64,000 nucleotides of DNA from Convolutriloba macropyga (Eukaryota), in contig NC_134477.1 of NCBI RefSeq assembly GCF_964194025.1, positions 35,898,001 through 35,962,000 of the forward strand. The letters are read 5' to 3'. The notes below the pieces were generated by a model that had not been told where the DNA came from, did not search any database, and saw nothing but the letters and a program-made list of their open reading frames with translations. Below are positions 29,000 to 42,566 of this stretch, in pieces. Position 1 is the stretch's first letter; each line of letters opens with the position of its first letter. A program made the translations under genes and the position numbers.

Positions 29000-31719
29000 A
29001 TGAAAATTACTCAGTTGTTTGCTACCTTCATATATATCATCATCCAGCTAACACAAGACGTGGAAAATGAGAAAGTATACCAATCTGCAGAAAATGTCCT
29101 TCAAAGGACTCTAATAGAAGGATACAATCGCCGTGCACGACCAGTCAAAAATTACGACTCGACTGTCAATATGACGTTCAGCGCTTCGTTGTACCAACTT
29201 GTGGAATTCAACGCCAAGGCTGAGACCATGACCACTCTAATCTGGCAACGGATCCAGTGGAAAGATGAAATGCTCTCCTGGAATCCAGAAGATCACGGCG
29301 GAATCGATGTGCTGAGGTATTCTCTGAGCGACCTTTGGGTTCCGGACATTTTACCCTACAATGAAGTGGGAGTTTTTGATCCAACAAAGTACCATAAGGT
29401 GGAATTGTTTCCTTTTCATGGTCATTTAGAGGTTGATATTTTCAGACTTTAAAATAAGTTTTTTTTTTCAGACAAGATATTTTCAGACAAATAAGTTTTT
29501 TTTTGTGATTGAACCTTAAATAATTTTGTCTGGGTTAACTTCAGCCTAGTTTATTAATTAAATCAAATAACCTTGATGAATCATATTGACCAGACATTGA
29601 TTGCAAAATCGCCTCCTTTTGATTGAATGCAATAAATCAGGTTTGTATTTTAATATGGTGGTATATAAAAAAGAATATATAATAGTATATAATGTATATA
29701 TAGATTTTATTGGCTAGTCTCGTCTCGTATCTTATCAGAGTATATAGACCCCTGGACCCTTTTTGTTCAAACTTTTGTTCAAAGTTGAATTACAACATGA
29801 CACAAAACAGATAGTGCAAAACGGAAAAGCAAAAAAAAATGTTTGCAACAGGAAACGAAACAGTTCCCATAAGGTAATACCTGTGCGAGTTGAGTATGAT
29901 GGCTCCGTTCACTGGACCAGTCCCCTAAGCATGACTACAACTTGCACAATGGACGTGACCAACTTCCCCTTCGACTCCCAGACTTGTGCAATTAGTCTGG
30001 GATCATGGCAGTACACAGCAGACCAGCTGGATATCCATTGCAGTGACCCGACTTTCGATTTGTCATCCTATGCTCATCACACTCAGTGGGAACTTCAAGG
30101 TCAGTAATGGTTTGGATCATTCCATAGTTTTGAATTTCATCATCAAGTTAGGTTTTGAGTGTACAGTCGGAGTACCACAGTGTGATGTTTGAATATGAAA
30201 TACGGCACTGTTACTGTGTCACACAAACAAAAAACCAAATGAATTGGTTCAAAATTTGTAAATAGTGGAAAAAATCTTTTGATAACCAAAAAGCTTATTG
30301 ACCCGGCTTTCCTGTGACATCTCATCTTCACTTATTTGTGACTGTGTTTTAACTGTTTTTCTTAACTGGTTTTTGACTAGTATTTTCAGTTGGTTTATCA
30401 CTGGGTTTTTGATTGACTTTTTGACTGGATTTAAGATTGAATTTTCATTGGAATTTTCACTGAGTTTTTGACTGGGTTTTTGATTGGGTTATTGATTGGG
30501 TTTTTTATTGGGTTTTTTATTGGGTTTTTGACTGCATTTTTGACTGGGTTTGATAGGATATACCCAAGATTTGTACTCTATTCATGCCTCCAGAATTGTA
30601 GTTCTATAGCACAGTTGGTTACTAGTGGAAAAATTCTTCCAATATTTCCCTTGTTTTTTGTCTCCTGCGCAAATATAAACCTGGTTCAAAAATGGCCAAT
30701 TCAACTCTGAAGACATAAATGAAGAACGAACAAGCTGGACCATTTATAACAAATCACCAAAACCATCTATCTGTATGGCTTTCAACAGTTTAGTCCCCTA
30801 TATACATGCAACCTCAACAACAGAATTCAAATATACTAAAGCATCAAAGCAGTTTCAGTCTTTGTCTTTTTTTATTTGTTTAGAACGAGTTTCAAATTGC
30901 GGGGTTTCACAAATTTGCCAGCATATCTTGTGATAAAGTTTAAAAGAAATGAGAAGACATTGCTTCGCTTGATTTAGACCTACAATCAAAAATTTTGAAC
31001 CCAATAGAAATTAACTACGGCACATTTTGGTTCCAATTACGTGTCTTTTTAATTGTTTAGAATCCTCATGCGAACGTCGCGAGATAGTGAGCAAAGGACA
31101 CAGATTCAGCTATCTCACATTCTCCGCCAGCTTCAAAAGACTCAGCGACTTCTACATTCGCAATCTCCTACTGCCAAACGCTGGACTTCTCGCTCTAAGC
31201 AGCCTGATATTCATTCTACCAGCTGATGGAGGTGACCGAATCGGGTTCGGGGTTACCTTGACTCTGTCTCTTTGTGTGAACTTGATGATTGTCACCGACT
31301 TCATCCCGGAAACATCCAAAACCATCCCGGAAATCTGCAATTATTTCCTCATCAACATTTTCCTCTCATCTCTTTCTATTGCACTGGCTACCTTGTCTAT
31401 TAACATGCATTTGTGGCTCAACAAGCGACAAGAGCGCAGAAAGCAGAAGGCAGCTGCAAGAATTTCGGCTAAGAAACCATCGATGGGAAGTCGCGAAGAC
31501 ACTGTGAGTAACAATTTGGCAGACCACGTCATCAATGGTCATGGGGGGAGTGTCGCGAAGGACGTTGAACAACTTCTGATTCAAGCAACCGAAATTGAAG
31601 AGAAGAGCAAAGCGTCGAAAATAATGGTGAAAATTGACGCTGCTCTTGGAATTCTGTATTTCGTGGGCACCACAAGCTATTCTACCGTATTTTTCATCAG
31701 AATAATCTACCACTATTAA
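29000..31719 (+). CDS. Cys-loop ligand-gated cation channel subunit (nAChR non-alpha / 5-HT3-like), 3 exons, 427 aa
   Basis: Exons 29000-29398, 29874-30099, 31061-31719 (phases 0 and 1). Signal peptide, YNRRARPV, WVPDILPYN (loop A), Cys loop CTMDVTNFPFDSQTC, GSWQY (loop B), M1-M4 with LPADGGDRIGFGVT, IPETSKTIP linker; no vicinal Cys in loop C. Confidence 0.93.
29401..29867. mobile_element. Degenerate TIR element forming intron 1 of the receptor gene (Introner-like)
   Basis: 8-bp direct repeat CATAAGGT at 29393-29400 and 29868-29875. Inside it, inverted ends GGAATTGTTTCCTTT and (reverse complement) GGAACTGTTTCGTTT match 13/15. Confidence 0.7.
30340..30552 (+). repeat. 12-bp tandem repeat (ACTGGGTTTTTG-like) in receptor intron 2
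   Basis: Repeated A(C/T)TGGGTTTTT(G/T) units. Confidence 0.8.
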
Positions 31720-32133
31720 ATAAATGCATTGGTCTGAACCAGCACATAACTTTCTGGATTAAAAAAAAACTCACTTTTGAAATAATTTTAGTTACCCCAA
31801 GCAAGAAAAAACGCATTTTTATAATCGCATTTAAATTATGATAGATGGACGCTGTTAGATTTGCTATGCTTAAATTACCGCACCAATAGATACGTCAATT
31901 TTGGTCATTTCAGCAGGCTGAAACTTATTGCATTGTATTCATTTAATATGCATCGTTAAATTGTATCTCTCTAGCTGTTTATTTAACGCAAAGCTATTGG
32001 CATGTATTAGATGAATGAAAACAATTCAATTGAAATTTTTGCCAATTGAAGAATTGCAGAATATAGACATAGCCGTAGGAATACAGTAAAGGAACCGGGA
32101 CCGAATTAAAAATAAATCAAACGGATTTTGTTC

Positions 32134-32576
32134 GGATCTTTTCAACAATTGCCCCCCCCCCTTTTGCAAAAGGGGGGCTATTCTTGAATAGAATTTAAGC
32201 GAGCTATTTATTAACCAATCAGAGACGACTAATAACTTTCCACGCATGCACATACTATTAAATTGAATAGAATGAAATACACCGTGGTATAGCAATTAGC
32301 CGAACCGGAATACAAAGCGAAAAGAATTTCCGACTGGCGGGTCGGTGGGCGCGCTTCGCGCGCGTCGCGGCTTCGCCGCGATAACCGACCCGCGATTTCC
32401 GGATTACATCCCACAGCGCATGAGAGGCATGGCCATGAACAGCGGTCCGCAATTGCGCTTAAACTAATATTCGGCTATCTAAAGTGTAGGCCAAGTAATA
32501 TTGTGGTAAAGTATAGCACAAAAGGGGAGGCGATTCTCTACTAGGTACCAAAGGGGGGCAATTGTTGAAAAGATCC
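32134..32576. mobile_element. MITE with 24-bp TIRs, GG termini and 8-bp TSD (Merlin-like)
   Basis: TIR GGATCTTTTCAACAATTGCCCCCC at both ends; TSD TTTTGTTC at 32126-32133 and 32577-32584; CpG-rich core. Confidence 0.9.
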
Positions 32577-32722
32577 TTTTGTTCAAAACTCAAAATACTT
32601 TGCGCAAGGGTAGACTCAGTGTTGTGAAACAGTCATGCTTGTCTAGGCTTTTCGGCTGTTTGTTGACCTGCAGAACAGACAAAAATCAAGATTATTGGCT
32701 TCGAATCATTACAGACTATAAT

Positions 32723-33210
32723 GTAAAGAGTGTAAAAATAATATTTTTACACCGTTAGTGCCCCCCTAATTAAGGGTTTAATAACGGGGAAAAGAGTGTA
32801 AAGAGTGTAAAAATAATATTTTTACACCGTTAGTGCCCTCCTTATTAAGGGTGGAATTACATATTAAAGTGTAATTTACGGGTGTAAATTATAGAAAAAG
32901 AGTGTAAAAAAGAGTGTAACAATAAGTTTTAACGGTGTAACAAAGAGTGTAACAATAAGTTTTAACGGTGTAATAAAGAGTGTAAAAATAACTTTTAACG
33001 GTGTAATAAAGAGTGTAAATATAAGTTTCAACAGTGTAATCAAAAGAGTGTAAAAATAAGTTATTCCACTCTTTTTCCACCGTTAAATCTTAAAATTACA
33101 CCGCTAAAATTACACTCTAACAGGGAATTCCACCCTTAATAAGGGGGGCACTAACGGTGTAAAAATATTATTTTTACACTCTTTACACTCTTTTCCCCGT
33201 TATTTTTGGG
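32723..33210. mobile_element. Foldback-type TIR element (about 80-bp TIRs, internal 33-bp tandem repeats)
   Basis: 32780-32858 is a near-perfect inverted copy of 33126-33203; an extra partial TIR copy lies at 32723-32776; AAAGAGTGTAA tandem repeats lie inside. Confidence 0.8.
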
Positions 33211-35150
33211 CAAAATCCTCGGCCCGGGTAGCGCCCCTACCAAATGGAACTTGCACTAGATTAACACAAACTCCGCAAAATGGCCTCTCTTATAGAATAT
33301 GTGGGGAGACAAAAATTGTCATCAAATTCCACAATTAAGCACGTGAGCATGTTTTTTGAAAATTAAATATATCTCTTTGGCGTTGATTTTGCTATAGTGG
33401 CACTAATTCATCTTTAAAGCTAATTCTAACTGCCGTCAAAATCTGATAATCAAAATTCAGATGAAACAATTGTTTTCATATTTGCTGTTGTAAATTTCAC
33501 AAATTTATCAAATTAAGAAAGTTTTTCATCATAATTCTTTAATACAAACAGTCCAATAATCCATGATCACTTTTCATGCAGAGGGATTTTTCATAAATTT
33601 ATAATAACTGATCATTTTTCAAACAGAGTTTTTTTTTCAAAAGCTTTCAATTACTGATCATGTTTTTATACAAACGGGTTCTTCAGAAATTAATAAAGCA
33701 ATCACTCATTCTTCCACAGAGTATAGCCCAGCATACCTTAGCCTAGATTGATCTGACTAATTCCAGCTTTACGAGATGGCCAGAGTTGGCTCTGAAAAAA
33801 TTTAAATTTTTTGTAGCAAATATATCTAAATATTATAAATGAACTCTTTCAAATTTGTAATTTATTTTAAAACTATAACTCATAATATCAAAACTTGTTT
33901 GAATTATCTGCATGTGTTTGCCCTCTTTAAAAAAGCGAATTTTGAAAATAATGCACTATAGAATTTGAATATTCTCGAGCTCGGCTCTCCAATTTGTGCG
34001 TCAAGCGTATCTGAAGTCGGACTAGTAGCTAATTAAAAGAACATTAATTACTTGACTATAGTTGAATTCTAAGTAACCTAGTATGTGAAAATTGAACATC
34101 GCAAACTGTGGATTATCAAGGACAAATTTTACTTAAATTTTAAAAATTGGCCAAAATGGCAATTTTGCCAAATTTGCTGACAACAATTTGAAGCAATTTC
34201 CCATCAATTATTTCACATTTTAACCAATATCACATGTTTTTGGATAACTTTTTGTGGAAAAGGATGGGCGAAATGGACCTGATCGTCCGTGCCAAGTGCT
34301 AAGAGCGGTAGTCTGTAATCAATTCTTGAAAAATTAGATAATTTCGAGGATAATTGATACAACTAATGTTGCCATTTAAAATCAATACTTAACTTTTCAT
34401 ATCACATGGAATAAAACTCATAAAGCCTCCAATATCTCTTTCTAAGAGAATATAGGTTTAAATCATTGTAATAGATGTGGCTTCAAAATTTGAATAAAAA
34501 AAGTTAAAAATTTGTTAACCTGACTTCAATTGGAAATATATCTGATTTTGGAGTGTTTCTTTTTATATAAGGAACTTTAGGTTAACGTATTTTAAGCACT
34601 TGCAAGAATTTGAAGTATACTTGCTTCTAAATTTAGTGAAATTTAAGTACTTGCAGAACTAATTTTTTTTTGAACTATAACGTTTCATTCAATTTAGCGT
34701 CGTAATGTCAAAATCAAAAATTTCGTTTCTAAATGTTGAGATACTCATTTGCATAATCAACAGCTGCACAGCTATTATATCTGAATGCACGAGAAGCTGA
34801 CGTGATCCGTCCAATATGTTCTCAGGAAGCAAAAGTATATTACTGAACCCCGTTTTCAACTGCAACTGAGATTCTAAAAATGACTTTACTAAAAACTAAA
34901 CGATAAAAATCAAATTAGTGACCTGAACAGCATCTAGCTGCGAGCAGTACCCGATGTCGTAAAAGTAAATTGATTGAATCAGTACAGCCATATTATAAAG
35001 AAATTTGATCAATTCAATGTGAATGTTTAAATTTGAATTGATGATGAATTGTTAATAGCTGCATTTGTGTTCGTATTTTATTAATCACTTTCGTGAATAA
35101 TCTCTCTAAAGCGGTTGCTCCTCTGTAGAAGAAATTGAGATCGTAATTTT

Positions 35151-41656: not shown

Positions 41657-42566
41657 CCGGACCGAATTCCAAGTCTATATCAGTACCAGGCAAGTCTAAA
41701 TCCAAGTCTTATTTAGTTTCCCAGTACTGGGCAAGTCTAAATACAAGTCTTACAAGTCTGGCAAGTCTTAACCAAGACTTGGATAACACTTGGAAGTTGA
41801 TTCCCAAGTCAAAACCAACTTTGCAAAAAATTTCGAGTGAAATTTTCGAAATCAAAAAATTTCGCAACGTGGCACGATTTTGGCATTACTTTTTGGACAC
41901 TTTCCCGGGGTGCTAGAGAATGATGCCGGGGCATACAAAATTGTATATTAGCACTCGGGGGGAATATTGAGGGTATTTATGCACTATTTCAGGCGTTCTG
42001 GGCCGTTTTCAGCCATTTTTCAGCCGTTTGCACCCGTTTTAAGCCGTTTTCAGCCGAACATTAGCCAAAAATCGACAATTACTTTTTCATTTTTGGCAAA
42101 TTCGAATACTTCTCAAGGAAAAGTCCTTAAAAAAGGAAACACCGCCGTGAGGGTGCCAATGCTAAACCGAGGCCCTCTCGTTCAACTCAATGTTGATGCA
42201 CTGCAGAACCTTTCAAATCGACGTTTCCCCGGCTATTTTTGACATTTTGTTCGGCTATTTTTGACGTTTGCTCGGCTATTTTTGACGTTTTTTACGGCTA
42301 TTTTTGACGTTTCCCCGACTGTTTTAGACGTTTTTTTTTCGGCTATTTCTGACATTTTTTCGTTTATTTTAGACGTTTTTTTCGGCTGTTTTTGACGTTT
42401 TTTTTTCGGCTAGCCGAGACTTGGATTTAGAATTGCCGAGTTTTAAATCAGACTTGGATTTAGAATTGCCAAGCCTTAAATCAGACTTGGATTTAGAATT
42501 GCCAAGTCTTAAATCAGACTTGGATTTAGACTTGCCCAGTACTGAAATTGACTTGGCGTTAGGTCC

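Follow-up and report, generated by a model that had tools for sequence, protein, structure and literature searches.

Intron 1 consists of an inverted-repeat element and one copy of its target site

The origin of new spliceosomal introns is a long-standing question, and the well-documented cases of introns born from transposons come for the most part from algae, fungi and protists. The question is raised for an animal gene by a 64,000-nucleotide stretch of the genome of the acoel Convolutriloba macropyga (NCBI RefSeq assembly GCF_964194025.1, contig NC_134477.1, positions 35,898,001 to 35,962,000 of the forward strand; hereafter the window, to which plain coordinates refer). The window contains an intact three-exon gene for a 427-residue Cys-loop receptor subunit, whose first intron carries the features of a DNA transposon. 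Did a transposon create this intron, and is the intron removed from the transcript? From the comparisons below we consider it likely that the insertion of a Merlin-type miniature inverted-repeat transposable element (MITE) into the ligand-binding exon created intron 1, with the target-site duplication (TSD) of the insertion supplying the splice sites. The parts of the intron and its borders are as follows.

29393..29400, plus strand: left TSD copy CATAAGGT, the last two bases of which (29399-29400) are the GT donor
29401..29867, no strand assigned: element of 467 bp with terminal inverted repeats (TIRs), non-autonomous and best assigned as a Merlin-type MITE; 29% GC, longest open frame 51 amino acids
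29401..29415, plus strand: left TIR GGAATTGTTTCCTTT
29761..29784, plus strand: two tandem subterminal TTTTGTTCAAA motifs, whose reverse complement TGAACAAA adjoins the ends of the family copies L004, L024 and L027
29853..29867, minus strand: right TIR GGAACTGTTTCGTTT
29868..29875, plus strand: right TSD copy CATAAGGT, in which 29872-29873 is the AG acceptor

Intron 1 spans 29399-29873 in phase 0, and equals the element plus one copy of the duplication, exact to the base. Both ends of the element begin with GGAA, and when 29853-29867 is reverse-complemented, 13 of its 15 bases agree with 29401-29415; paired as RNA, the two ends match at 14 of 15, one mismatch turning into a G-U pair. A 9-bp repeat given by the repeat finder (CCATAAGGT) holds only if the final C of the right end is counted twice. 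Joining 29398 to 29874, the predicted junction, places GTAATACC directly after ...CATAAG and restores the frame, with the reading ...KYHK|VIPVRVEYDG. The pair of GT and AG supplied by the duplicated AGGT is the single one that restores the frame. An alternative acceptor, the CAG at 29851, was ruled out, as it shifts the frame by 22 nucleotides. In the predicted fold of the intron RNA, the stem formed by the TIRs closes the intron in both the minimum-free-energy and the centroid structure (z = -2.6).

A first-pass annotation, made from the letters of the window alone, had described an exact 8-bp repeat and GG-starting inverted ends matching at 13 of 15 positions around 29399-29873; each part was confirmed on the sequence and with the repeat finder. 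Its account of the splice sites, with GT from the left copy, AG from the right copy, one copy left after excision and an unbroken reading, holds on the sequence as well. A scan was run for exact 8-bp repeats around ends matched at 13 or more of 15 positions, at a spacing of 100-2000 bp. The 64-kb window holds three such structures, each with a GG start, whereas neither 20 shuffled windows nor 93 kb of unrelated loci contained any, so that a chance origin of the repeat and the inverted ends is excluded.

The insertion site is continuous in the paralogues

The product of the receptor gene has a signal peptide, a Cys-loop and four membrane segments, which are distributed over the exons as follows.

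29000..29398, plus strand: exon 1, with the start codon, the signal peptide and the first half of the ligand-binding domain (open reading frame (ORF); Pfam Neur_chan_LBD, E = 1.8e-23; gene model)
29874..30099, plus strand: exon 2, with the second half of the ligand-binding domain including the Cys-loop (Pfam, E = 7.9e-21)
30100..31060, plus strand: intron 2, GT-AG, without inverted ends
31061..31719, plus strand: exon 3, from the transmembrane region to the stop codon (Pfam Neur_chan_memb, E = 1.3e-13)

The absence of intron 1 from related genes was judged on the paralogues and on P0002, the nearest match from another assembly (54% identity). In the closest paralogue, L033 (81% amino-acid and about 75% nucleotide identity), KYHKVIP is encoded on continuous DNA, and the site reads TACCACAAGGTTATACCC, compared to TACCATAAG|GTAATACCT in the interrupted gene. 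P0002 is continuous across the site, as are at least ten further paralogues (L034, L036, L038, L039, L043, L046, L047, L051 and L053-55), so the alignment of paralogues that the first-pass annotation had put forward as a check gave a missing intron throughout this set. At a minimum, the three closest paralogues (L033, L034 and L036) end their ligand-binding exon at the point of intron 2, after WELQ, and intron 2 is therefore probably ancestral and intron 1 the addition.

In some of the more distant paralogues, located on C7 and C6, introns lie 4 to 7 codons past the site, at other positions or in other phases: in the codon aligned to R137 in L056 (phase 2), before V139 in L035, and within E140 in L040 and L037 (phase 2). 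No inverted ends were found in the introns of L040 and L056, the two that were compared. Introns have repeatedly split this short part of the ligand-binding exon, with three further intron positions within 7 codons. A transposon origin of intron 1 and its gain by the interrupted gene are well supported.

The interrupted gene is under selection

The element is also present at this locus in a second Convolutriloba assembly (ENA ERZ25071359, locus L086). L086 is probably the other haplotype, because its variants match those in two of the four DNA runs that hold the gene. The differences between the window and L086 are as follows.

Upstream DNA: 2.6% substitutions; 9 indel columns
Element / intron 1: 1.5% (7 substitutions); 9 indel columns, in three indel events
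Exons: 0.9% (12 substitutions, 9 synonymous and 3 non-synonymous); 0 indel columns
Intron 2: 5.6% substitutions (54); 56 indel columns

The density of substitutions in the exons is 0.3 times that of the non-coding DNA (P = 6e-6). Downstream of the insertion, the exons contain 9 synonymous substitutions and 1 non-synonymous one, which gives a dN/dS of 0.03 (binomial P = 1.2e-5 against neutrality); provided that the two assemblies diverged after the insertion, as the test presumes, this shows that the gene was kept under purifying selection with the element in place. Exons 2 and 3 would not remain under such constraint if the gene were truncated and unspliced; this argues strongly, though indirectly, that the element is removed in frame, presumably via the GT and AG of the duplication. 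One difference falls on the acceptor itself: A>T at 29871 in the second assembly turns AAG into the more usual TAG.

The protein models in public databases come from plain ORF calls on these acoel receptor genes, which read into the next intron and stop there. P0044, a 150-residue read-through ORF of exon 1, is the sole public protein for the interrupted gene, and P0001 is an ORF call that ends in read-through at the next intron of an uninterrupted paralogue. Being mere ORF calls that run into introns, the public models of C. macropyga genes are uninformative on splicing. One of the two carries an NCBI product name.

The insertion was present in all four DNA runs, and neither an empty-site contig nor a polymorphism was seen. 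The first-pass annotation had called the intron recently gained; this was not borne out, as the insertion is shared by 4/4 DNA runs and by a second assembly with 2.5-5.6% non-coding difference. Because all runs and both assemblies carry the insertion and its two copies have diverged, we judge it to be not very recent.

The ends of the element define a multi-copy family that fits Merlin best

Although the element has no coding capacity, its ends occur in many copies. In a census based on pattern counts of the ends, with the reversed pattern as the control, the 14-base TIR core was found 334 times in the genome, compared to 40 times for the control, and the terminal 15-mer GGAAYTGTTTCSTTT 198 times, compared to 12. 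The 30 sampled copies are flanked by unrelated sequences outside the GG, whereas about 30 nucleotides inside it are common to them and contain recurring TGAACAAA motifs. Other complete copies of the family are 165-535 bp long and have decayed 8-bp TSDs, with 7/8 positions matching in L024 and 6/8 in L018. The excess of the core over its control agrees with the insertion of a TIR/TSD transposon, as had been claimed from the window, and membership of the element in a real TIR transposon family is well supported.

The Merlin superfamily is defined by GG termini together with TSDs of 8 or 9 bp (PMC8101967), and the intron-1 element has both the GG termini and the 8-bp TSD of a Merlin MITE. The genome contains 19 matches to DDE_Tnp_IS1595, the Merlin/IS1595 transposase. 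Four bounded autonomous Merlin elements (L063, L067, L069 and L070) are about 1.2-1.3 kb long with exact 8-bp TSDs, and their ends read GGGTCTTTCC / GGGTCTTTCCC or GGATCTTTTC. Each of them has the full GG start on one end or both, and two of them have AG on the other end. The best link to a transposase-bearing element is the right end of the Merlin L066, TGAACTGTTCCCTTT, which matches the family consensus at 13/15 positions. Given the definition, the similar autonomous Merlins of this genome and the L066 end, Merlin is the best assignment for the intron-1 element, in line with the first-pass remark that GG termini with 8-9-bp TSDs are typical of this superfamily, and also of MULE.

A separate Merlin-derived MITE of 443 bp, with the TSD TTTTGTTC, is located at 32126-32577, 2.3 kb downstream of the element and about 400 bp beyond the receptor stop codon. 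The autonomous Merlin in L070 has exactly the same TIR, GGATCTTTTCAACAATTGCCCC. This MITE is missing from L086, where the site is empty, and Merlin elements have therefore been recently mobile in C. macropyga.

Further copies interrupt coding sequence

Three of the eight complete sampled copies, in intron 1, L003 and L018, interrupt coding sequence that exact excision repairs. The copy in L018 (G000:C2:5859041-5859452) is 412 bp long and sits in a coding exon, with both exact TIRs and the TSD GCCGAAAG/GTTGAAAG; once the 172-codon ORF is restored, its two halves align to the database protein P0045 in the same order. The exact removal of this copy is of the GG-AG type (AG|GG...AG|GT), whereas splicing at the GT at TIR positions 7-8 would leave two extra codons. 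In L003 (positions 1501-2043; G000:C1:4897053 onward), the family copy, about 535 bp long, divides a gene for a copper type II monooxygenase (PHM/DBH-like) between ...KPFAF and RTHAHSLG, and the frame is recovered by a GA-AG excision alone. In L003, mutation of the right TSD copy has produced CTCTTTTA, with a pyrimidine run ahead of the AG. Pfam searches with the flanking ORFs of L007, L028, L030 and L018 gave no match.

The single-copy gene RPE contains a related intron. In L085 (positions 1730-2237; G000:C8:16468646-16469153), a 508-bp segment, CAAG|GGAACT...TTAAAG|AT, has GG-AG borders, a related GGAACT start and weak inverted ends (10/12). The orthologues in two other acoel assemblies (L088 and L089) are intronless and read through as EKW(V/I)(Q/N)DM. 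The intron is present in the second Convolutriloba assembly (L087), where its ends are conserved and its interior is 12.6% different. A canonical GT-AG alternative in RPE was judged unlikely, since it adds 10 residues that are seen in no acoel orthologue. In all four loci (intron 1, L018, L003 and RPE), the excised piece starts with G and ends with AG, which suggests a register rule, drawn from these four loci, whereby the second base would be set by the position of the AG relative to the duplication.

Across the family, AG directly precedes the TIR in 43 of the 334 copies (12.9%), compared to a background of 4.8-5.4% (2.4-2.7-fold, P about 1e-7); this enrichment could reflect a target preference or the survival of copies at exon ends. 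No preference of the family for AGGT targets was found: among the 10 AGGT-flanked hits, only one, intron 1, is a complete element in an ORF. Overall, the open frames beside the 30 sampled copies do not exceed the background in length.

Measured against the features of Introners, as intron-generating transposons are termed, the insertion at intron 1 is exactly the intron, its removal restores the coding sequence, and the spliced reading matches L033. As for many similar intron copies, no full-length similar copy was found, and the three interrupting copies come from a small sample of eight. Non-GT-AG borders are not a feature of intron 1, which is GT-AG, whereas L018, L003 and RPE would have them if spliced. 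The earlier proposal that intron 1 is a member of an Introner family thus stands in part, with the copies that interrupt coding sequence in its favor, and the lack of an AGGT preference and of a second full-length copy against it. Altogether, these comparisons are suggestive of an Introner-like behavior of the family.

Proposed mechanism of intron creation

We propose that a non-autonomous Merlin-type MITE entered a once-single exon of the ligand-binding domain and would thereby have duplicated its 8-bp target, CATAAGGT. Because the target contained AGGT, both splice sites would have been available at once, the left copy (AG|GT) acting as the donor and the right copy (AG|GT) as the acceptor. 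Splicing from 29399 to 29873 would remove the element along with exactly one copy and recreate the original codons. In the RNA, the inverted ends might pair and bring the splice sites together, which may aid a weak acceptor without a pyrimidine tract; this role of the TIR stem is suggested by the predicted fold. The element may be one of several family copies that survive in exons, the spliceosome removing whichever register ends with AG. Extended to the whole genome, C. macropyga would possess an intron-generating system, in which exonic Merlin-type MITEs are removed in the AG-ending register, the register dictates the 5′ dinucleotide (GT in intron 1, GG in L018 and RPE, GA in L003), and the paired ends hold the cut sites. 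We put this extension forward tentatively, as possible but short of probable.

Alternative explanations

Several observations weigh against a spliced intron of Merlin origin. The donor reads GTGGAA, and the acceptor is weak, an AAG with about 8 pyrimidines among the 18 preceding bases; the missing polypyrimidine tract had been remarked upon in the first-pass annotation. The indexed sequencing runs that hold the gene are four DNA-type runs of one study, with no RNA run among them. When the genome was searched with the whole 467-bp element by a BLAST-type method, which passes over very common words, the sole match was the element itself; no second full-length copy was detected by this check, and only the ends are repeated. 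A tblastn search of the 30 sampled family loci with Merlin ORFs found no transposase. Among the autonomous Merlins whose ends could be read, none was found with exactly the family TIR (GGAAYTGTTTCC ends), so that the search for a transposase with matching TIRs, another of the proposed checks, led no closer than the L066 end. Between the two assemblies, the element differs less (1.5% and three indel events) than the flanking non-coding DNA (2.6-5.6%), and the selection test depends on the order of events that it presumes.

The weak splice signals, the 150-residue P0044 as the only public protein and the lack of an RNA run would suit an unspliced element, which would truncate the receptor after residue 133 and leave a pseudogene or a 150-residue fragment. 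However, exons 2 and 3 differ from L086 by 9 synonymous changes, 1 non-synonymous change and no indel, compared to the 54 substitutions and 56 indel columns of intron 2, and the ORF-call proteins are silent on splicing, as P0001 truncates even an uninterrupted paralogue at its next intron; we hold such a failure of splicing to be very unlikely. Another explanation is that intron 1 is old, and was either lost from the paralogues or later entered by a MITE, so that the transposon was not its creator. The introns of L056, L035, L040 and L037, 4 to 7 codons downstream, would speak for this, but they differ in position or phase, and those of L040 and L056 lack inverted ends. Moreover, no break occurs at the site in at least eleven paralogues, the closest among them, and the TSD abuts both exon edges, with the intron equal to the element and one TSD copy to the base. 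An old intron is thus hardly credible, and creation of intron 1 by the insertion itself is preferred.

With regard to the superfamily, the missing autonomous partner with identical termini leaves some room for another group with 8-bp TSDs, such as hAT, P or MULE. The ends of hAT elements begin with YARNG rather than GG, which weighs against hAT. All four bounded Merlins of this genome have GG-type ends and 8-bp TSDs, one Merlin end reaches 13/15 to the family, and the window contains a definite Merlin-derived MITE 2.3 kb downstream of the element; a superfamily other than Merlin is accordingly improbable. Somewhat less so, yet still unlikely, is a one-off lucky accident, in which the element is an ordinary MITE repeat, L003 and L018 lie in dead genes, and the family has no Introner-like behavior. 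It would be consistent with the whole-element search finding only itself, with the single AGGT-flanked hit that is complete inside an ORF, with the unremarkable open frames beside the 30 sampled copies, and with L003 and L018 having no canonical GT-AG pair that restores the frame. Against it stand the three of eight complete copies that interrupt coding sequence with homology support, the enrichment of AG before the TIR, and the single-copy RPE, whose GGAACT-ended GG-AG intron is missing from two other acoel assemblies.

Comparison with known intron-generating elements

In Florenciella sp., Introners have been described whose two splice sites both come from the insertion site or TSD (Gozashti et al. 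2022, PMC9860276, Fig. 2E). Similar to these, intron 1 has a short non-autonomous DNA transposon in an exon, with neither splice site borne by the element and, as predicted, an unchanged mRNA. By analogy, intron 1 taken as a single locus appears to work as the recruitment of both sites does in Florenciella, which is a known mode. The two cases differ in that the host of intron 1 is an animal and the superfamily is Merlin-like. Introner families consist of many near-identical introns, whereas the family of intron 1 shares only the ends of about 30 nucleotides and the interior of the element is unique. The 2022 survey lists only two animal groups with Introners (PMC9860276). Merlin is unmentioned in the main text of the Introner literature that was searched, and the term "acoel" has no match in part of it.

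The introner elements of Micromonas and Aureococcus are MITE-like, and their TSD gives one splice site (PMC11282704). They share with intron 1 the origin from TIRs and a TSD and the use of the duplication as a splice site. Their other site is borne by the element, and the TSDs of Micromonas are 3 bp long, whereas the intron-1 element carries neither site and has an 8-bp TSD. In the tunicate Fritillaria borealis, species-specific MITE-derived introns with non-canonical borders have been reported (Henriet et al. 2019, as cited in PMC11282704). According to that citation, Fritillaria resembles the present case as an animal lineage with MITE-derived introns, and L018, L003 and RPE would likewise need non-GT 5′ ends. 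The Fritillaria introns are given there as mostly AG-AC and AG-AT; by contrast, intron 1 is canonical GT-AG, L018, L003 and RPE keep the 3′ AG and a 5′ G, and the present loci are known from DNA alone. The intron-1 element resembles the Merlin superfamily (Feschotte 2004; PMC8101967) in its GG termini and 8-bp TSD, and DDE_Tnp_IS1595 elements of the same architecture exist in the genome; unlike the autonomous Merlins, it is non-autonomous. In the full-text literature that was searched, no mention of non-canonical or transposon-born introns in acoels turned up.

The locus offers a clean animal case of a transposon-born intron, with an empty site in a paralogue, an intact duplication, both ends, and a gene that, as selection indirectly indicates, was kept working afterwards. 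It links a canonical GT-AG case to sister copies that would require GG-AG or GA-AG removal, and the acoel could serve as a tractable system for how the spliceosome comes to tolerate transposon insertions. If the genome-wide system is real, acoels would be a further animal lineage with active Introners, and one whose spliceosome tolerates GN 5′ ends, comparable to Fritillaria.

Other features of the window

A further TIR element of 807 bp is located at 41722-42537, with the exact 8-bp TSD CAGTACTG, the ends GGCAAGTCTAAATAC matching at 14/15 positions, and repeated CAAGTCT motifs; it appears to represent another GG-ended family. L086 lacks a segment of about 510 bp that the window has at 32718-33229; this points to a second indel or insertion polymorphism. 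A run of short TTGACTGGGTTTTTGATTGG-like tandem repeats lies in intron 2 of the receptor gene, at 30370-30560.

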